A stretch of 64,000 nucleotides of DNA, taken from NCBI GenBank assembly GCA_964247055.1, contig OZ176052.1:2108001-2172000 (forward strand), in the 5' to 3' direction. Source of the DNA: Paragordius varius. Lineage: Eukaryota > Animalia > Nematomorpha. Position numbers and translations under genes: made by a program. How positions within the stretch are numbered: the first letter of the stretch is position 1; each line of letters begins with the position of its first letter. Below the pieces are notes generated by a model. The model was not told the origin of the DNA. It searched no databases and worked only from the letters and a program-made list of their open reading frames with translations. Below, in pieces: positions 43,501-57,234 of the stretch.

Positions 43501-45187
43501 TTGCGATTGACCGCGAAAATATCCATTAGTTAAGCATTTCACTGTATCCAACAAAAGGGATTTAGGATGAATTAAATCAACCTATTATAAGATATGATCA
43601 ACATATTCACCTTCTTACATTAAAAATATTAACCATTTCTAAAATATTTGGATTGATAAGGCAAAAATATTATCATGAAAAATATGAATTGATAAAATAG
43701 ATAGTTTTTAATGTTGATATTTATCGTAAAATGCATATATGCAATTGTTGAATTTTAAACAGTCGGTTAAATTTTTTTGAAACTTTAAGGGTTATAAAAA
43801 ATATTTTTTAAATTTAAAACAATAATAATATATTTTATAAGAACTAACAAATTTTTCCAATCAATTAATATATATATATATATATAATTTATGAAAACAA
43901 ATCAATACTATAATTATTAATAAATGATCACTACAAATAAAAGCTAAACTTTCCTCTTACAGAAAAGAAATCTCGATTTCGTAAACTGTATAATATAATT
44001 AATTTTTAATAGAAAAATATCGAACATTGGATAAAATCTAAACAAGGTTATTAGTAACTAAAATTTTTCAAACAATAATTATAATCACATTATATAATAC
44101 TCTGATCTAATATTCTACCTTGTTTAGAATTAGTATCGATTTTTTATCCTTATTTTGTTCAAGAATATCCAGAGTTAAAAGATCTAATTTATGTCGAGTC
44201 CATATATTTGATGCATCCACTACCACACAAACTAAAATAATTCATTTCTTAATATATTAAGAAATTATTCCAATCAATAAAACAATTTTTTGACTTAAAT
44301 AAAGGAAAGAAAAAGGTGAAAATACATATATTTTTCGTTTTTTCTTAATTTTGACAAAAAGAATTGTTCTTTACCGTAAAAAAAGTATTTATGACAAAAT
44401 CAAATATTTTATATTGGTATGTTTATAAATCAAACATAATATTTTATTCATTCCGTATAGTCTAGATATACTTTTAATGATTAAAGAAGCATATAAAAAA
44501 TTTGGTATTCTAAAGAAAATAGCGCATAAAATGTTAAAAAAACTTTGTGAAAAACTATATTATCTATTATTTTTATTAAATTTTTAACAGTTATAATACC
44601 AAAATTTTTTAATATATATAGAATGACTTTCAGTAAAAAATAATTAAATTATCCATGATTTTATTTAATTTAAAAAATATTTACTGATATCGGCATCTTT
44701 TGCAGCGGTTTGCGGAAGGGTGGACATTTCAATATCAAGATTATGCCTATGCATTAATCCAAATAGTACTTTTTGCAATGCTTTTTGTTAACAAGGCCTG
44801 GTGTATCGTAAAAAGCTAATTGGATATCCTCATTGGTAAAAACTGAAACAATGTTTTTTCGGGTTGTGTGAACTTTTCTGGATTCGGATAAGACCTATAT
44901 AATAAATTAAAAATCGTATACCCTCCAATTCATAAGCTTATTTATTAAAGTAGATTTTCCCGAATTGGGTAAACCAATAATTGACACCTTAAGAAATTTT
45001 GCTTGATCAAATTGTTCTGGTGGAAGTTTTGACAAATATAATTGTTCATCTAAAAGTTATATGAATCGAAACTTTTAGTTTTTGGAATGGATTTCGTTAA
45101 AATTTCCTTATTTATGGTTTGACACTGGACGGAAGAATAGTTTTTAAAAATATTTGGAAAAATAATTTTCCATGCTTTTTGAAGCAT
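37592..45187 (-). CDS. ERAL1: Mitochondrial Era-like GTPase, 11 exons, about 499 aa
   Basis: Exons: 45073-45187, 44922-45049 (G1 GLPNSGKST), 44770-44894 (HTTR, DTPG), 44685-44746, 44119-44231 (..ILNK), 43331-43581 (VD..), 40558-40781, 39675-39793 (WPNF..VSAL), 38784-38933 (WKYNSQYVTDQQPEQIV..QELLNHL..IPY), 38067-38147, 37592-37723 (KIIIGPSGERI..LMDTFRCDV; KH domain). All phases are consistent and the exons total 1500 nt. Confidence 0.92.
38535..38700. mobile_element. MITE family B, truncated copy
   Basis: TA|cagtaaaaattgagattttacggacaaaacgtaaaaagacaaatat; the right arm is missing. Confidence 0.65.
39045..39329. mobile_element. MITE family B copy
   Basis: aagtaaaaaatgaaattatatggacaaaacg...gtttgtccgtataatttcagattttactg|TA. 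Confidence 0.8.
40179..40469. mobile_element. MITE family B copy
   Basis: cagtaaaaattcaaattatacggacaaaacgtaaaatataaagacaaata...tttgtctttatatttttacgttttgtccgtataatttcatcaatttttactg. Confidence 0.85.
40803..41038 (+). repeat. 5' LTR (236 bp)
   Basis: tgttacacgc...ctttctaaca; direct repeat of 42729-42965. Confidence 0.9.
41470..42462 (-). pseudogene. Gypsy pol fragment (RNase H end, linker, integrase), inverted relative to the LTRs
   Basis: ILTDHLPL, LRWVNRLNDYDFELRYQAGPKNRADYLSR, FWPKLENDL, WERLHIDIAGP, VISDNA and PYHPKSNGMVER on the minus strand, with stops and frameshifts. Confidence 0.88.
42729..42965 (+). repeat. 3' LTR (237 bp)
   Basis: tgttacatgc...ctttctaaca. Confidence 0.9.
42968..43050. 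mobile_element. MITE family B left arm, at whose terminus the LTR element inserted
   Basis: cggtaaaaattgaaattatacggacaaaacgtaaaaatgtaaagacaaata follows the TSD directly. Confidence 0.65.
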
Positions 45188-45278
45188 GTTTTTGCTGTCT
45201 GGTTTGCCTTAAGTCATAAATTCAGATGTGAATTGCGTATGACTTAAATATCAAAAATTATTTTTCAATTTTGCGATT
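45188..45278. promoter_or_regulatory. Putative 91-bp bidirectional promoter with a palindromic core
   Basis: Lies between the divergent ATGs of ERAL1 (45187) and the SLC38A10-like gene (45279). Inverted repeat ttaagtcata (45209-45218) / tatgacttaa (45238-45247), with an inner aattc/gaatt pair. Confidence 0.65.
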
Positions 45279-48200
45279 ATGGTCGATATAGATACCTCTC
45301 AAACCATTGTATTAGGCAATAGCATTATTGGTGTTAGCATATTAGCACTTCCATTTGCCTTTCAAAAAGTTTTTTTGTTATAAACTTTTGTAGTGTGGTA
45401 TTTTATTGGCCATCCTAATCTTTCTGATTGCTTGTTGGATAAATAAATCATCATGCCGGTTACTCATTCGATCTGCTGTGTTAACCAAAACAAATTCTTA
45501 CGAAGATGCATGTTAGATTTATATGTATAACTTAATTTTTAGCGAGTATAATATTGGGCTTTTCTGGATGCGTTATAACACAAATTAGGTATATTTTGAA
45601 TATATACAAAAATATAAACAGTTTAATCCTTTTCCTGTTTGGTATTTGTTCGGCTTACTTGATAGTTATTGGAGATTTGGTTCCCGAAGTTTTTTGTCGC
45701 ATGTTTGGATTACAAGTTTTTGATTATTTTAAAATTTTAGGATCCAAAAAGTACCAGAACATGGGTACTTTTATTTTTCTGTTCGGTTGTGATATTACCT
45801 CTTAGTTTTACGAACCGGATAGAACGAATGAATCGTGCCTCAACCCTATGTGTCATATTCTATATCCTTTTTACCCTTAAAGTATAATTATCATAATGCT
45901 TAAATATATTTTGCGAATATTTTTATACATCAAATATGCATTTAATTCTCATTTTTTATTGTTATTTCATAATATGATTTTAACAGAGTTCATTACTCAA
46001 ATCATTAAACCAAAAAAACTATAATATTTTAAGTTTTCTTTATATCATATTTTTTTATGTATAAACTCTATTTCATGATATTCATTGTTTTTTGTTTTAA
46101 ATTGCACATAAAAGGCAATTTTTCAAATTTTAAGAATTAGAGTTTATGTGTTCATATTTTTTTGTTATTCATATTATTTGGCTATAAATTTAAATAATTG
46201 CACTTACAGTCATGTATATGTAGAATTGACAGACGTTTTTAAATGATTATAATTTGTTTTTAATTGTAATGTTTTATATGTCAACTTTCAACATGCGCAT
46301 TTTTTAAGCATTAAAATAATAATAGCTTATTTATTGTAAACAATTAAAAACAAAGTAAAATCAATTATAAACGTATATCTGACAATTCTAAACATACATG
46401 ACTGTAAATTGAACCATTTCACCAGAAAATTGATCCTAAATTTGCAAAAAATATTTTAAGCCTATATCGGAATCAAAATTGCCTTAAAGGTCTTCTCATT
46501 ACAAAAATCTCCATAAGGGACGGGGATCATTATACTGGAATTCAGTGCACTATAATAATATATTATAAGTCCATAAATAAATTTATGTAATTTAGCTATT
46601 AAACGGTATTATTTAATTAATTCTATACATTTTGTGGTTTAAACATAGATTTTCTTTGAGGCATTACCCAAATTGGCTTTTCAACTTGATCAAATATTCT
46701 TCCAATTAACATTTTGGCACACGAAAGGATTATTGAATGCCCTACCTATTATAGCTTTATCCCTAACATGTCAAACGTAATTTAAATTTTTTTGGAATTT
46801 AAAGACTTTATTTTGTTTATTCAGGCGGCAATTGCTAATAATTTGGGTATATTTTCCTAAAAGCTAACTAGTCTGAAGGTATTTTTAAGACCTCATAATG
46901 AGTCAAAAACAATATTGAGCATTATGTTTGATTTTTATACAAATATATCTAAAATAATATCAAATTTTTAACATTTTTTTGACAAAGAAGGGTTATGATG
47001 CGGATCGCTACATATATACCATATACACTTCGAATTCACGCTTGAACAAATCATAAAAATTCAAATTCACCCTTGAACAATTTAAAATAATCTTAAAATA
47101 AATTTGGTTTCTGATATTGAAAATTTCCTATATTAGGCATTTTTTTACAAAATGTAATTTCGTTCAAAATTAAAATAAAACTGAAAAAATAATAAACTAT
47201 ACCGTGGGTAAATATTTCATATTAATGATGAGTTATATTAGCTTAAAAACATATAATTTATTTTTAGGGTGAATTTGAATTGTTCGAGGGTGAATTTGAG
47301 TTGTAAAGGGTATTATTAGTCAATTTGCTGTATATAATAAAATAATTTTTGATTTTTAGACAATTATTTCTGGTATACCAAGCTCTATCACACCCAAACC
47401 AAAAACGAATGGCCCGTATATATAACAATGCCATAGATACATGCACACTTTTATACATATTGGTAATTATACATCCTAATCTAGACTAAATATTACTTTA
47501 ATCCTAATATAAATTTCCATGCGCATATACGCGATTTGCACTTTTGAAAATTACTTTTTTAACATTTGAGATTTAACGGTTACTTAACATCTGTAATTCA
47601 TTTTAAACTAAAATTTTATTTTTGGGTTGTATACTATCACAATTCATATAGTTAGACATCTACCATATTTCTTTTTCATTTTAGATTTTGTATAATTTTT
47701 TTCACATATTCAAAAATTATTGTTTCATATAATATATAAAAAAATAACAGAAATTATTAAAATATTTAAAAAATTTCATGATATTATTTAATACAATTTC
47801 CAAATTCACCCTTGAACAATTCACTTAAAATATGAAATTCTGCTTACAATCAATATAATGCTGAAAAAATAATAAACTATGTCGTAAAAATATATTTCAT
47901 ATTAATGATGAGATATATTATCCCGAAACACATAATTTAGAGTGAATTTGAATTGTTCGAGGGTGATATTGAATTGTAAATGGTATATAAATAATGGATA
48001 ATAACACTAGACAACAAATTTTAACTTTTTTGAACTGCCATTCTTGTAAATTTAATATTTATTTCATTAAAGTACATAATTAGTATATCTGAAAAGAAAA
48101 TTGGTCTAGTATGGAAGAATTTTTTTATATGAGAGGTTATCGATAATTTTTGGCCCCGATTTAACATTAAACTCGAAATTTCGAAAATTAAAAGTTTTAG

Positions 48201-51200
48201 ATATGAAGCCAAGTATTTTATATCATTCGAAAGAGCGCAAAAAACTGCATCTTTTAAATGGTAGTAAGTCATTTAAATCAATCGGATGTAAAAGTTATTT
48301 GGATTTAAATGATCGAAATTTTCAATCCTTAAATAAGTCAAGAATTTTCGCAGACAAACTAATTTGAAAATCATATAAATTATTTATTATAATTATTAGG
48401 GTTATATTAGTATTTAATTTAAAAAAAATGTTTGAAAAAGCTTTTGGTTTGCTTTTTTAATATAAATTATAATTATCATAAATATTTTACCTAGTGGATA
48501 CTAAAATGCATAGTTATAACTGTAAATTTATAACATAATGGCTATAAAAGATCAAAAATACCTTAAACTTTATTTTTATCAATAAAATTTTTAAATTATC
48601 AGCATTATAAAGAAAATAAATTAATATTGATGAGATGGTAGTTTTTAAAAAACAAAAAACTTAAAAATGGCTGTTTTGAGTGACATAAAAGCAATAAAAA
48701 ATGTTTTAATCTAAAAAACTTTCTTGTGTTATTCTTTTTGGACATTCATCACCATCTAAACAAAGTTTGAGCTATTTTCATCCATTAGTTTTAAAAATAT
48801 AATAATTAAAAAAAATGCTCTCGCTTCGCGCGTTTGTCGCTCTTTGTGTCCAATATTAACTGTCGATGTAATACATAATAGTATGCATTTTATAGAGTTT
48901 TTATTACTCTTTCGAATGATATATTACAAATGGGCATTACTTGTATATTTTGAAAGAAAAATATTTTTTAGTAAAATTTTGATAAAGAGGGCGCATAATC
49001 AAAAAAAATCAAATTATACAAAATTCTTCCAACGAGTTATAATTTTTATTTCAGATTTTCTGTTAAAATGATACTAAATATGAGAAAATTCAAAAAACTC
49101 GAATGGCAGAAAATTTGTTGTCCAGTGTAATTAACAATAAGTTTTGAATGATAAAAAAACTGTAAGAAATTATTCCATTAACATGTATATTGTGCAAATC
49201 ATTTTATTTGGAATGTTATTAAAGAGTGTAAATTAAAGTATTTAAATCTAAAATTATATTGTTTTAAGCTTGAATTGTAAAATGTCAATTATAAGCATTA
49301 CTACACCATATCATTCATTTATTCATTTATTAATTAAATAAGGTTGGTTTACTCGGTTACATTGCATTTGCCCCAAAACTCCTCCAAACTACTAACATTA
49401 ATCCCGATATAACAGCACCTTTGAATGGTTTGAAATCTTTGCCACCCCATACTACACTTTTTAACTCTAAACAAGACGATCAAATATTACATAATAATTT
49501 ATTGGAACTAAAAGGTGATATCCTTATAAATTTGAATGCAAACACTCAAAAAAATGTAGCAAATGGTCAATCATCCCTATTCTCTTTACTAATTACGGAT
49601 TTGATAACAATAGGTTTCGCCCTGAGTTGTGCACTGAGTTTTCCACTCTCACTCCTACCCTGCAAACAAACGCTTATGATTCTCTTGAATTGGTCGAATC
49701 AATATCCACCCAATAAAATTACCAAGAATAATGTAATTAAGGTAAGTTTTTTTAGTGGGGTGTGGTTTTAAAAATCTATAATAAGTGATAATTTAAAAGG
49801 TAAAATAATAGAATTCAAAAGGTAATATGATGGAAATTAGAAAGTTTATTAATTGATAGGGTGATCCTAAAATTTTGATCCTTTGATAATTACGAAAAAC
49901 ATAACAGTTTGTTTTTAAGATTTACATTGCTCGAAAAAAATTAAATTTTAAAACATATATAATGCTATATAATAATATATTAAGAATATTATATATTTAA
50001 TATTAATTAAGAATACTGTATTATACTTACATAAATGGAAATTTAGAATTAAATACCTGTTTAATTTTTTTTTAAAAAAACTACTTTTTAATCTATTATA
50101 ATTCAGCGGTGTTCTTAAGTTTACCCATTTTTTTATGCAATATGTATGGCAAAATAGCGTTATTCCTCAATTAATGATATAACAAGCCCCATACATATTA
50201 CGCATGATTCGATGATATCATTGGACGAAGAGGCTAGCCAAAAAATGCCTATATATCAACGAAAGCAACAACCATCCAATGATTATAGTATCAATTCTTT
50301 TCTTATAATTTTTTGTTTTGAAACTTTTTTTTGGGGTGGGGGGGGTCTTTCAATTAATTAAAATGATTTAAACTTAGAAGTGTTGAACACGTGGCCCGCG
50401 AGAAATTTAGATATAAAATTTTACGATCATCATCATGATAAAGGGTAAGCCAAAGATTTTGTACCACAAAGTAATTCATATTCATAATATTTATACTTTG
50501 TGGTAATCTGAGGCGATTTTTTTTACCTAACACATACCCTTGTGTGTACAAATATTGATTTAACTAATCAATAAAAACTGGCCTTTGCCGTTAGCGCATT
50601 TTCATGTCCCAACCAACACCGAGAGGTAGCCATAGGACTTTGCTAATTAAAAAAGTATTTGTAAACAAATATCCTCTGAGAAATATTTCCGAATTTTGGC
50701 AATCAACTTGCAGAAATGTTGACATAAATAGAAGTTTTTACAGTCTTAGTTGTAAATTCTAATAAAATATTCGTTAATGCCCATGTATATTCCAAATGCG
50801 GCCCGTGGAATTTTTTGATTTATAAAAATGCGGGTATCGCAGCCATTTGGACACCCCTGTAATAAGCCTTGCTTAAAAAGGGTTAATTATAAAATAGGCA
50901 ATTATCTAATCAACCATTTAGGTTCAATACTATTTTCTCAGAGTTTGGGCGTAAAATATAACGGACCTTTAAAAAATGACCGTTTTTAGTGTTACGCTCT
51001 ATTTGAAGAATTTTATTTTCTTTTACGCTTTATTTCATAAGTTTTATACTGGCTTCTGGTTTTTAAGTTAAAATTTAAATCATACGGACAAAATGTAAAA
51101 ATATAAAGACAAATATTTTTTCTAAAAGGCAACCACATTTTAATCTTGATTTTTTTAAATATAACTCATCTACAAATTATAATATAGAAATGTAAATTGG

Positions 51201-53998
51201 TAACATAATCAATGGTGTATTTTACGATTGTAATACAATGTTTTATATGGGATAAATTAAGGTTTAAAAAAGTAGGGTTGCCTTTTGAAAAATATTTTGT
51301 CTTTATATTTTGTCCGTATAATTTTAATGTTTACTGTAAAATATAGTTGGCCAATGTACATTTTTATTTACTACTGAGTCCCATGTAATACACTCATTTT
51401 ATACCATGAGTTATAGAGAACAAATCAATTAGTCCTATGTTAAAGCAATCTATGCATTCTTGTGGCGAAACGATAAATGATAGTTTGGAGAGAGTTAAAT
51501 ATTTTGGAGTTTCTCTCAACACACTGATAACCGTATTAATTGTCACATTTACTCTAATGATATCAATAGTGTTACCTAATAGTAAATATATATTGTATAT
51601 ACATATATATATATATATATATAGCATTTATAGTTCAAATTCACCTTTAAACATTATAAATTCACCTTTGAACAATTCAATTTACCCTTGAATAATTCAA
51701 ATTCACCTTCGAACAATTTAAATTTACCCTAAAATAATTTATGTTTTATTTATAATTAAATATTACTATATTTTTTTATATTTGTAAAAAAGAAATTTTG
51801 TATGTAATCTAAATAATACTTAAAAAAATAAACTTTTCCATAAAAATATATATAATTATAATGATGAGTTATATAAGACCGAAATTTCATAATTTATTTT
51901 TAGGGTGAATTTAATTTTTCGTTGGTGAATTTTGAATTATTCGAGGGTGAATTTAAATTGTTCAAGGGTGAATTTGAATTATAAATGGTATATATATCCG
52001 AACTTTTCATTAAGGCACACTTTTTGAAAATTAATTAAAAATATTAGGTTTGGCTTTTTATTTAATAACGGTAAATTGGTTTATAATATAGAAAGATGCA
52101 AATTAAGTCGCTTATACGATATATAATGTATATTGTTGTAATTATTTTACCAATGAAAATAAAATTTACTTTAAAATACTTTATTGAACATGTATAATTT
52201 ATTTTTACATACTCAATCAAGTTAACATTAACAAAGAATTAAATTTTGCTTTTAATGTAAATAAAAAGGAAAATTAAAGGCTTAAAGACTGAAAATGAAA
52301 TCGTTTATTGAACCTTTTTGCGAAATGTATCTCAAAATTCTAATTAAGGAACTTGTTAATTTTTTTTACAAAATAATTATAATTACATTTTCATATATTT
52401 TTGCGTTGTTTTAAAGTTGAAGATATGCTCAATATAATCGGAACATTGATGGGAACACTAATAAGTTGTATCATACCTGCTCTAATGTATCTTACCCTCC
52501 TTTCCAAAAGCCGTAATTATTCTCACTCTTTGATTAATATCAAAAATAATAACACCAATCATGTTGATTTGTTCAGTTTTGATAAAAATATCAATGGTTC
52601 AATACATTCCTTATCACCGATTTCTAATGCAACTACCCTCCCGATCACTGAAAGTTATGGGGATAAACGGAGAGCTCAGGTTTTTAATTTGATTCAAATT
52701 TAGTGTCGTTTATGTTGAAAAAGGTCACTTTTAATGAAAAAGGTTTATTAGAAAATTTTTTATACAAATTTATTTTTGTATAATTTTCATGTGCAGTCTT
52801 GTCTTTTCATACAATGCGGTTTGAATTTCCCATGTAAAATTTGAGATAATATTTCAGATTGTAAATAGCTTAGCAATGATAGATTAGTTAATATGATGTT
52901 GTATACATTGAAAGCTTAATTATTCGGTCAGTTATTTTTTTAGGTAAAAATTCATTCGATTATTTCCTCAGGCAAATTAATGCATTTTTGTGAAACATTT
53001 TTTAATTTTTGTGTCATGGCATCCTTACGAAAAAGCAATTCATCACTAATGTTGAAACTTTTCATACAGTTTTTGCAAAAAATCTAACTTCAACTTTTTT
53101 ATTTTGGATTATTAAGCAAATCAACATTTCTATTTATTAGCAGTTGGGCATTGATTTGAATGTAATTTAGGATATTGCTGCTTGAAACTTTTTTTAAGTC
53201 GAATAAGTAAATTTTCCATTATGTTACTTAGTTGTTATCCCTCATAAAATATATTTTGTTTCATTATTTTTTAGCATTAAATACTTTCAATCGATCGATA
53301 TATATATGTTTATCTTACCTTTTCTTACTTTTATTCATTAGCGACCAAATATGGACAAATTAACACAAAAATATTCCTCTTTAGATTTTTATGGTTTTTC
53401 CATCTTGGTAAATATAATTTTTTACATCTGTCCGATCAATGTTTTAGATTCTCCTATTATCTGGCATTGTAATAGTATTATTTGGTATGTCTAATTACAT
53501 TCCGATTTGGAAAGAAAATGAAGCCTTGTTGCCTGCCATACCTTCCCATGTATCAGGACTTGAAAATAGTGCGATTGTATTGACTCCAAAAGTTTCAAGT
53601 TTATTCTTTTTCCCCCATATTTATAGCAATGAATGAATATGTAAAATTTTAATAATTTATTCAATTATTTAACGTAATTAGATGGGCATCTAAAATTATC
53701 TTATGCCACGGCAGTCAATGCATCCATAGATCGTTTACCTCAACAGTTTGTGCCAGAAAATTTGGTTCTTCCTGTCTTAGAAAAATCCCCTAACAATCTT
53801 GTTAATAATACAGCTTTGAATTTACAAAATAATTTACTACCTGATATCAATACTAATGTCGAAAAATCCAATGACGGTGATCATTTCAATATAGATAAAA
53901 ATACGGATGTTAAAAAGCCCTTCCTTGCGCCAACTCAAAATATACCCAAAATTGAATTATTAACCGTTAATAATAACAAAACAGCCATTAACTCTTGA
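45279..53998 (+). CDS. SLC38A10: SLC38/AAAP-family amino-acid transporter, SLC38A10-like, 13 exons
   Basis: Exons: 45279-45368 (LGNSIIGVSILALPFAFQK), 45394-45511 (CGILL..), 45543-45588, 45622-45715 (CSAYLIVIGDL), 45741-45881 (VILPLS), 46649-46776 (LPIIALSLTCQT), 47360-47462, 49343-49741 (VGLLGYIAF..SFPLSLLPCKQ), 50158-50287, 51417-51581 (..LPN), 52417-52679 (IEDMLNIIGTLMGTLISCIIPALMY), 53448-53598, 53682-53998. Phases are consistent and the motifs match SLC38A10 as recalled. Confidence 0.88.
46207..46404. mobile_element. MITE family F (CAGTCATGTA termini, TA TSD)
   Basis: TA|cagtcatgtatatgtagaattgacagacg...ctgacaattctaaacatacatgactg|TA. Confidence 0.75.
47017..47312. mobile_element. Foldback-like MITE family D copy
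   Basis: Arms are built from ~21-bp units ttcaaattcacccttgaacaa and their reverse complements; tacc...ggta termini. Confidence 0.75.
47800..47985. mobile_element. Family D copy with a shortened left arm
   Basis: aattcacccttgaacaattc...gtgaatttgaattgttcgagggtgatattgaattgtaaatggta. Confidence 0.7.
50375..50859. mobile_element. hAT-type MITE with a degenerate left end
   Basis: gtgttgaacacgtggcccgcg...gcggcccgtgg...tttggacacccctg. Confidence 0.6.
51065..51336. mobile_element. MITE family B copy
   Basis: catacggacaaaatgtaaaaatataaagacaaata...ttgtccgtataattttaatgtttactg|TA. Confidence 0.75.
51622..51990. mobile_element. Family D copy with about 5 tandem ~21-bp units in the left arm
   Basis: ttcaaattcacctttaaacat/tataaattcacctttgaacaa/...; the right arm is gggtgaatttgaattataaatggta and carries reverse-complement units. 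Confidence 0.85.
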
Positions 53999-54242
53999 GT
54001 ATAAAATATCTTAAATTGTGTAATTTATTAGCAAATGTTGTAAATGCAGTTAAAAATGTAATGTAATATATATTTTAATTAGTGAATTGGTAATTTTATA
54101 GGTGACTGAGTTATTTATAATATTTATCATTATATATCAATGTACCTTAATCCCATGACAATTATTCTTCGATATATTTGTATAAATATTTGAAATCTTA
54201 TTATTTATATATGGAATGGATAGGTGCACTTATACGCAAATA

Positions 54243-54462
54243 CAGTCATGTATCCTTTATTTTATCAAAATTTTTTTTTAGTTAAATGGGTAAAATATTT
54301 GGTAAAGAATAGAAAAAACAAGAGCTCTATGGTAATTCTTATACTTTTTAATGAATATGTTATTGTTAATACCATAGAGCTCTTGTTTTTCCATTCTTTA
54401 CCAAATTATACCCATTTAACGAAAAAAGATAAATTTTTGATTAAATAAAGGATACATGAATC
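54243..54462. mobile_element. MITE family F copy, almost fully palindromic
   Basis: cagtcatgtatcctttattt...ggtaaagaatagaaaaaacaagagctctatggta / taccatagagctcttgttttttccattctttacc...aaataaaggatacatg. Confidence 0.75.
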
Positions 54463-54559
54463 TATTAAAGACCACTAAAAGCAGTATTTTAAGCTAATAT
54501 TAATTGTACGTAAAGAAAATTGTATAACTCTTGCATATATATTTATAGCCATATTCATT

Positions 54560-55550
54560 CATATATTGCCGTCTGACGCCGACCGGTAATTCTTTGGTTA
54601 AAGGCATATATAAGGCAGGAGAATGTGCACATGTTTGGTCATTGCATTTCTATAGAATAAACTCACAACTATTGGATATTAGCAAGCTATCTCTGTTTTT
54701 AAGCCTTTGACAAACACCAAATATTTTCGACCATCCCATCCCCTTTAATTTGTTTCACCATAAACCTCTTGTATGCCCACAATGATGTCCTTAAAGTCCC
54801 CAACATATGCCGTAGTAACATATTATACGTTATCCTTTCTTCATTTTTTGGAAAATAACTGGCCTACCTAACATTATAAAAGGTTGGATAACATTCATAA
54901 GTATATTATCACGAAGAGTTAGCTCTTAATATGCATATTGCTGATGAATTATAAGTAATTGGCGGTTCACATATCAAACACTATTTATTTGATACCAACA
55001 ACAATTTTTTTTCAACTTTTCATCTTAGAAAAATATTTTGTCACTAACCTTATTATTTTTCGATGATCTTATTACAATACCTGACTTGTTTCTAAATAAA
55101 ATTCGCCCACTGATGAAATAATATTTCCAAGGAAATTTGTGTTTGATAGCGAGTTTCAGTGTTTGCAAAGAGCTTTCGGGCTAAATTTTCGGACTTATTT
55201 ATTGATTTTAGGCAGTATTTTTTTTAAATTTTGTTGGTACTTTAAGTAGTTAGTGTAGTGGCCAGCTCCATACCAAACTATCCAACGTTTTCAATACAAA
55301 ACAGTGTGGTGTATAACATTGTGTGATTGATTAATCCTTGGCATTATAAAACTTGTCTTAATATATTTGTACGTGTTTTATTACATGTAATTATATTACC
55401 AATGAAAGTGCCAAACTTAATTCATGACATAAGTCAGTTTAAAAATGATTGCTTTGAACAAATTATCATTACTTTAAACATGTTAAAGCACTTTGTAACA
55501 GAGAGATCGTCTTGCAAATTTGTATGATCATACAGTGAACACAAAAAATA
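54560..55550. other. Coding-like, stop-riddled segment, probably a decayed transposase or other gene
   Basis: Higher GC than the flanks, with short protein-like frames on the minus strand (e.g. KRWIVWYGAGHYTNYLKY). Family not recognised. Confidence 0.2.
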
Positions 55551-57234
55551 CCATGATAATAGGTAATTTTATGCTAGAAAATTTATCAGCATTCTCATGG
55601 GCTTTTGGTTTTGAACCTAATGAGATCTAAGGAAAATAATAACACTTGTAAGTGCAATAAAGCACAATTAATTTTAAGTCTATTAAAGATATTATTTTCA
55701 TATTTTTATAAAATTTTACTTTAGATGTGGGCTTCAAATCTTAAATTTTTTAACAAGTATATATTAAAAATATTTTTTCTCATTTAGATTATATATGTAT
55801 TTTTATCCTGTACACAGACGCTAAATACCTCATTTGCCAACTTCAAAATGCATATTTTTAGAATTTTATATTTTGGCAAAAATTATATATAATATGATAT
55901 TATAAACGTTATATTTATTGGAAAACTTTTAATTTTTCGAATAGAGCACAAAATTAAGGAGTAACTAACCAAAAAACTAAAAACAAACCGCTGTCATTTC
56001 ACATATTAAAACCCCAAACCATTTTTCCGTGGAACAAAACTTTAATCCAGCGTTTAATGAAGCTAGAATTTCATAAAATTATCTATTGATTGGCAAAGTC
56101 TCGGTCATTTTGATCCAATAAAATTTTATAACAAAAATTTTTTAAAATCGGTTTTGTATAGTTACTTATCGACGTGATGACTAATTTTTTTCGGATGAAA
56201 GTAGAAATAGTTCAATTTTTTATGCTGTCACACTGGCATTAAATATAAATTAAAAGATTTTCGATCAAATTATAAATGGTTAAATTACACATGTTAAATA
56301 AATATATTTATAATATCATTTATTTAAACTTAAAGGAAACACGAAATAATTACATAAAATAGAATGTTAAAGACAAACATTTATCAACATATTTCACGGA
56401 TGTGGAGTTTTATTGTCAAAATTATAATTATGTTTTTCATTATCATTGTAAAATAACTAACATATATTAATGCAAAATATGATGATTTTTGCGCATGTAT
56501 ATAGCAGTTCACATCGAAAGGTCCGAATATAACCTTATACTGCGTTATCGTAATTTGTGCAGATTTATGCAAACAACTTCGGTTTTCAAAGCCTTTTCTG
56601 TTGAACCACCGACTATTTTTGAAAGTGCCCAATCAATTTGAAATTAGTAAATTAATTCATATATTTTATTACAAAAAAACGTAAAAACAAACCAAAAAAA
56701 TTAAATAATATAAAAACTTACTATTAGATAAAAGACAATATAATCCCTTATTTAACCATAGATAATTGCTAAACTATCTATCTATCAGATAAATCCTATG
56801 AAAAAAAATTGAAAAAAATCTACTGAATATATGCAAAGAAAAATTATACACAAAGATGGGTTTTAAAACTCAATCTTAGTAATAATATAGTTTGCCAATC
56901 AAATTAATATCTTCTTCTGTTTCCTACTGGTGATACCATACGCCTTTTAGGCAAAGGAGATCTACCCTAAAGCAAATAAAAAAAGTAAAATATATTAAAC
57001 GAATTAGTTAAAAATGATTAAAAAATATGAATTAGATTGCCCTTATCGCCTTCATAAACAAATTTTTAAAATAAATAGCGTTTTATAAAATCAATGCTAT
57101 TCATTATTAACTTTTTTGGATTATATAAATTCGTTTAATGTTAGGTATTTTCAAAGGGTAATTCTAAGAATTGGAATTTTATTTTATACAAATCTCAATT
57201 TAATCAAAAAAGGGTTCAAGATGGGGATATTTAA

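Follow-up and report, generated by a model that had tools for sequence, protein, structure and literature searches.

The locus and its gene model

The window analysed here, a stretch of 64,000 nucleotides from the hairworm Paragordius varius (C3:2108001-2172000), belongs to an assembly of 110.5 Mb in 44 contigs with about 27% G+C. On its forward strand lies a putative amino-acid transporter gene of the SLC38/Aa_trans family, in which four segments of 25, 31, 33 and 25 nt stand between the first five exons. The neighbouring gene, ERAL1, is divergent and lies on the reverse strand, with three micro-introns of its own (45072-45050, 44921-44895 and 44769-44747). The start codon of the transporter gene is about 200 nt from the first of these (45072-45050), leaving a very short shared head-to-head promoter region.

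The coding frame of the transporter gene opens at ATG 45279, the first ATG past an in-frame TGA at 45240, and all exons are read from the forward strand. Exon 1 (45279-45368) carries 30 codons, from the start codon to the TM1 motif, and is followed by micro-intron 1 (45369-45393; 25 nt, phase 0, GTTTTT..TTGTAG, 80% A+T) and by exon 2 (45394-45511; 118 nt), which encodes TM2. Micro-intron 2 (45512-45542; 31 nt, phase 1, GTTAGA..TTTTAG, 84% A+T) leads to exon 3 (45543-45588), a piece of 46 nt with 14 whole and two split codons that encodes the N-terminal part of TM3. The rest of TM3, with the conserved ..IGD, is contributed by exon 4 (45622-45715; 94 nt), which lies beyond micro-intron 3 (45589-45621; 33 nt, phase 2, GTATAT..AAACAG, 85% A+T), a segment that is in frame and stop-free. 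Micro-intron 4 (45716-45740; 25 nt, phase 0, GTTTTT..TTTTAG, 88% A+T) is then followed by exon 5 (45741-45881; 141 nt), which encodes TM4.

Exons 6-10 were placed at 46649-46776, 47360-47462, 49343-49741, 51419-51581 and 52417-52703, with boundaries that were drawn by eye and by reading frame and are less certain than those of exons 1-5. The resulting ten-exon model reads through 522 codons to a single stop at its end; its nine introns, all of them GT-AG, measure 25, 31, 33, 25, 767, 583, 1880, 1677 and 835 nt. Compared with SNAT7, the studied gene has these 522 codons in the model and a low-complexity insert of about 55 residues in exon 8. This N/L/Q/T-rich insert (49370-49570 on the forward strand; about 55-65 residues) is flanked on both sides by conserved membrane segments, and nothing in the SNAT7 alignment corresponds to it. 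Directly after the last conserved exon, a 24-nt GT..TAG segment (52680-52703, forward strand) forms a further candidate micro-intron, whose length is a multiple of three and which brings an in-frame TAG of its own. The frame does not tell whether this intron is real, because it ends within 4-9 codons whether the segment is spliced or retained.

Intron ends, phases and reading frame

Each of the four segments begins with GT and ends with AG, and the A+T content of the four micro-introns (80-88%) stands against 64-66% in the exons. The initial annotation had proposed four introns of 25, 31, 33 and 25 nt opening this gene, and both the coordinates and the GT..AG ends that it gave are exact; the junction peptides quoted there are also correct on translation. 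When the four segments are left out, exons 1-5 form a single open frame from ATG 45279. Exon coordinates were joined only for counting stops and phases, and all homology searches were run exon by exon.

The consequences of retention differ among the four segments. A stop appears at codon 34 if micro-intron 1 alone is retained, at codon 70 for micro-intron 2 and at codon 145 for micro-intron 4. Retention of the 33-nt segment, as had been claimed for it, leaves the frame open and adds 11 residues, RYILNIYKNIN, in front of the Ser encoded by the spliced split codon of intron 3. A transcript retaining this segment would carry no premature stop and, because the length is a multiple of three without an in-frame stop, its retention would be invisible to nonsense-mediated decay.

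For introns 1 and 4 the frame admits a unique solution. Downstream of intron 1, the frame opens only at the acceptor (in-frame TAG 45391-45393), and the exon-5 frame opens only at 45741 (in-frame TAG 45738-45740); each of the two introns has only one phase-compatible GT. Alternative GT/AG pairs around introns 1, 3 and 4 were considered and rejected, since none keeps the homologous frames.

Frame restoration alone proves nothing in this DNA, because blind joining of open reading frames performs no better than decoys. In a scan of 264 kb (the window together with L005-L024), ORF-joining GT..AG pairs 18-45 nt long were no commoner than decoy pairs, for which four to five dinucleotide pairs were used (TG..GA, GA..TG and others), whether or not filters on A+T contrast were applied. 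De novo detection of micro-introns by this route thus gave no excess of GT..AG over decoys across the 264 kb. The case for introns therefore rests on homology and spacing.

Match of the exons to the SLC38 family

In MAFFT alignments the short exon rows from the C-terminal half come out scattered, so a local HMM was used instead. This HMM (468 nodes) was made from the own-genome paralogue together with seven orthologues of SNAT7. In the exon-wise profile search, residues 8-29 of exon 1 fall on nodes 61-82, residues 2-38 of exon 2 on nodes 86-122, exon 4 on nodes 140-168 (17.6 bits) and residues 5-43 of exon 5 on nodes 178-218 (18 bits), with later exons on nodes 265-296, 372-395 and 391-423, so that the order of the exons on the SNAT7 profile is their genomic order. 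When the six-frame pieces of 44000-56000 (n = 785) were searched, all profile matches with E < ~5 were on the forward strand. A tblastn search with the own-genome paralogue matched exons 1, 4 and 5 in order, the match of exon 5 showing 32% identity over 47 residues. The exon-wise scores against Pfam Aa_trans (PF01490) are 16.3, 11.9 and 16.9 bits, each under the gathering cut-off of 25.6, and these matches are again collinear (profile positions 91-117, 213-246 and 346-379, with exon 4 at 91-117).

Relative to the known SLC38/Aa_trans proteins, i.e., SNAT7 as the nearest retrieved relative and SLC38A9 and AUX1/LAX3 as solved folds, the matches are collinear from TM1 to TM11. The conserved Gly and the ..IGD of TM3 are common to these relatives and to the studied gene, and the LeuT fold is a feature of the relatives. 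Judged from its sequence, the gene is best assigned to the SLC38/Aa_trans transporters, and its similarity to SLC38 members is collinear over the transmembrane core. The contiguous SLC38A10-type N-terminus that had been proposed for the spliced reading thus holds at the level of the SLC38/Aa_trans family, through the open frame, the collinear homology and the exact spacing described below. The narrower label, SLC38A10, is tentative; the human SLC38A10 N-terminus probably aligns well and has the same TM3 spacing.

The gene with the micro-introns is not the SNAT7 orthologue, as the SNAT7/SLC38A7-like gene of this genome is a different, intronless locus (C1:12016060-12017568; L001:369-2216, reverse strand) that encodes 616 aa and was named by word search. 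Two further Aa_trans genes, each intronless or nearly so, were found at C6:6458946-6460388 (L002; open frame of 570 aa) and at C3:10906496-10907708 (L003; open frames of 241 and 183 aa). The other Aa_trans genes of the genome, on C1, C6 and C3, are thus intronless or nearly so, in contrast to the nine introns of the studied gene.

Several searches returned little. A homology search with exon 8 (133 aa) gave only two low-complexity proteins and no orthologue, likely because the N/Q-rich insert attracted them, and a protein atlas search with the same exon gave generic Aa_trans leads only, below 0.9. With the exon 3-4 read-through piece, a word search gave one candidate and no match, and a PDB sequence search gave nothing. 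A word search with the SNAT7-protein profile and the separate exon rows gave nothing SLC38A10-like. Two A+T-biased low-complexity transporters (P0013 and P0015) were rejected, as they show no match to the gene. In the SNAT7 genes of Tachypleus (horseshoe crab), Apostichopus (sea cucumber) and Blattella (cockroach), no intron position coincides with any of the four; this mismatch is uninformative, because those genes are paralogues.

Spacing around intron 3

The spacing argument is based on SNAT7-subfamily paralogues and Pfam. With introns 2 and 3 removed, the exons cover profile nodes 85-168 without gap or insertion: exon 2 ends at node 123, a split codon takes node 124, exon 3 occupies nodes 125-138, a second split codon takes node 139, and exon 4 begins at node 140. 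Exon 3 is too short for a significant match, and its arithmetic placement ranks 3rd of 455 by emission score; in this placement Gly-5 of exon 3 coincides with node 129, an invariant Gly. The nodes around intron 3 form a block without indels in the 8 family members compared (the paralogue and seven SNAT7 orthologues), and introns 1 and 4 adjoin small loop differences from the family alignment, of 1 node and 3 nodes, respectively. Counted from NSYE, at the close of exon 2, to the Asp of IGD/IAD in exon 4, the distance is 40 residues both in the paralogue and in the spliced reading. When the exon 3-4 read-through piece is aligned to Pfam Aa_trans, the alignment begins only at the residue after the 33-nt segment. 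By their ends, composition and spacing, the four segments are very probably genuine spliceosomal GT-AG micro-introns.

These results bear on the possibility of a decaying pseudogene, or of a locus that does not code at all, in which GT..AG pairs restore frames accidentally. In DNA of 27% G+C, where ORF-joining GT..AG pairs are as common as decoys, such accidents are to be reckoned with; however, an accident would have to produce a 522-codon open frame with nine GT-AG introns, family matches that are collinear and confined to one strand, and the exact spacing of the family, all in a gene that is single-copy in the assembly. We regard chance or decay as extremely improbable.

Position of the 33-nt segment in the protein fold

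To place the introns in the fold, an AlphaFold model of a horseshoe-crab SNAT7-like protein (P0006) was used, which was built on a 10-row alignment and has a mean pLDDT of 80 and a pTM of 0.80. The model has the LeuT/APC fold, with AUX1/LAX3 and SLC38A9 as its best matches among solved structures. On this model, intron 1 maps to the turn between TM1b and TM2, intron 2 to the short helix before TM3 and intron 4 to the variable loop after TM3. The 11 residues added by retention of intron 3 would be inserted between profile nodes 138 and 139, and node 139 corresponds to P0006 residue 134, the tenth residue of the 38-residue helix 125-162 (TM3), with a pLDDT of about 95. The initial annotation had the insert beside a transmembrane helix; on the model, it falls inside one. 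The insertion site is neither a loop nor a terminus, i.e., not a place at which a retained isoform would be expected to tolerate it. The mean Kyte-Doolittle hydropathy of the 11-residue insert is −0.38, compared with +1.76 and +2.27 for the stretches of exon on either side. Because this polar insert falls inside the core helix TM3, the transporter with 11 additional residues would most likely be inactive.

The same site has to be weighed if the 33-nt segment is taken as coding, in which case exons 3 and 4 would be one exon with a lineage-specific insertion of 11 residues. Such an insertion would split a block in which neither the 8 SLC38 members compared nor the Pfam alignment shows an indel, and would do so mid-way in a confidently modelled transmembrane helix. 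It is true that the spacing evidence comes from SNAT7 paralogues and Pfam rather than from SLC38A10 orthologues, that the reading frame is open through the segment and that no pyrimidine tract stands ahead of its AG. However, the segment has 85% A+T compared with 65% in each flanking exon, and canonical GT and AG lie exactly where the family spacing requires them. A coding insertion at this site is therefore a distinctly improbable reading.

Constitutive removal or regulated retention

The reading that we favour, with a probability of about 85%, is that the four segments are U2-type GT-AG introns of the ordinary kind, removed constitutively and unusually small (25-33 nt), in a single-copy SLC38-family gene. 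On this reading, four micro-introns would interrupt the first 490 coding bases of a gene for an Aa_trans, LeuT-fold amino-acid transporter, and the same gene would then have introns of 583-1880 nt. The RNA would be cut at these sites constitutively, and it would be by happenstance that the 33-nt intron has a length of 3n and lacks an in-frame stop. If left in by error, it would yield an mRNA without a premature stop that would be translated, and the product, a transporter whose TM3 has 11 mostly polar residues added within its first third, would most likely be non-functional. The 33-nt intron would thus be a "translatable intron" rather than a sign of regulation.

How often such an intron is expected was estimated from the eight micro-introns of the window, i.e., the four described here, the three in ERAL1 and the candidate at 52680-52703. 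Over these eight, 8/24 frames are stop-free. In simulations based on their pooled base composition, 38% of 33-nt introns in phase 2 contain no in-frame stop, so that the chance of being translatable is 1/3 (for a length of 3n) × 0.38, or about 0.13 per micro-intron. About 1 of 8 micro-introns in the window would thus be expected to be translatable, and 1 is seen; the other two whose length is a multiple of three (the 27-nt ERAL1 intron and the 24-nt candidate) contain in-frame stops. The initial annotation concluded from the open, stop-free frame that the 33-nt intron is a candidate for regulated retention. This conclusion does not follow, because a length of 3n and a stop-free frame are expected by chance in about 1/8 of the micro-introns.

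The acceptor of the 33-nt intron is the feature that sets it apart from the others. The acceptor is TAG in 7/8 of the window's micro-introns, directly after a T run in 4 of these, and 45589-45621 is the longest of the eight and has the sole CAG end, which is preceded by an A-rich tract. Because of its length and this A-rich CAG end, intron 3 may be spliced less efficiently than the others. A possible branch-site motif, TATAAC or TATAAAC, occurs in 4/8 of the window's micro-introns. In the 33-nt intron, TATAAAC was seen by eye only 2 nt from the AG, and it would not be a branch site there, because it is too close to the AG.

These features are what could be brought forward for regulated retention, i.e., for a 33-nt intron that is kept in some tissues or conditions to give a stable alternative or inactive isoform escaping nonsense-mediated decay. 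The length of 3n, the absence of an in-frame stop, an acceptor that could mean weaker splicing and a possible branch-like motif next to the AG would all fit such a switch. However, the first two are accounted for by the chance rate given above, and a polar insert within TM3 of a LeuT-fold carrier makes a working isoform unlikely. Moreover, selection against translatable introns is general (PMC11334263), so that the 33-nt intron is better seen as a tolerated liability than as a device. Taken together, we consider regulated retention very unlikely, and constitutive removal is the reading carried forward below.

Comparison with known short introns

Introns under about 30 nt were, to our knowledge, long thought to be absent from animals. 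Two papers on hairworm genomes make no mention of introns. A 2026 comparison of 51 animal genomes reported introns of about 30 nt or less from two lineages only, Dicyema japonicum and the myxobolid myxozoans, with intron medians of 22-27 bp (PMC13644364). Like the micro-introns described here, those introns are animal, canonical GT-AG and A+T-rich, and they have reduced splice-site motifs (PMC13644364). However, the genomes of Dicyema and the myxobolids are compact and their introns are short throughout, whereas here the same gene has introns of 583-1880 nt with transposon-like repeats.

Two other known classes concern the 33-nt intron in particular. The translatable introns described in Paramecium and other eukaryotes (PMC11334263) are exactly its class, being of length 3n without an in-frame stop. 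Exitrons (PMC10985678) likewise keep the frame on retention and give an isoform with an internal insertion. However, exitrons are situated inside coding exons and resemble exons in composition, in contrast to the 33-nt segment, which is intron-like in composition and would break a membrane helix.

It seems on balance likely that introns of 25-33 nt are genuine in this bilaterian, the genes of which otherwise show no compaction, so that one transcript would need the excision of both a 25-nt and a 1.9-kb intron. If so, the hairworm would add one more lineage to the animals with introns under 30 nt, after Dicyema and the myxobolid myxozoans, and would stand out by combining tiny and long introns in single genes, with the tiny ones clustered at the 5′ end. 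This would bear on the minimum intron size that an animal spliceosome can handle and on the processing of one transcript with widely differing intron sizes. The 33-nt intron would in turn offer itself as a test case, being a "translatable" micro-intron that lies within a membrane helix and is tolerated there. It serves mainly as a control point, since chance alone is expected to yield tiny introns that keep the frame and lack a stop, and such an intron would speak for regulation only together with RNA data.

The long introns of the transporter gene contain short MITE-like elements with terminal inverted repeats, at 47058-47302, 51615-51997 and 51060-51341. Two of these elements are made up of ~20-nt repeats of the type AAATTCACCCTTGAACAATT, and similar units of about 20 nt can be seen by eye near 47800-47985.
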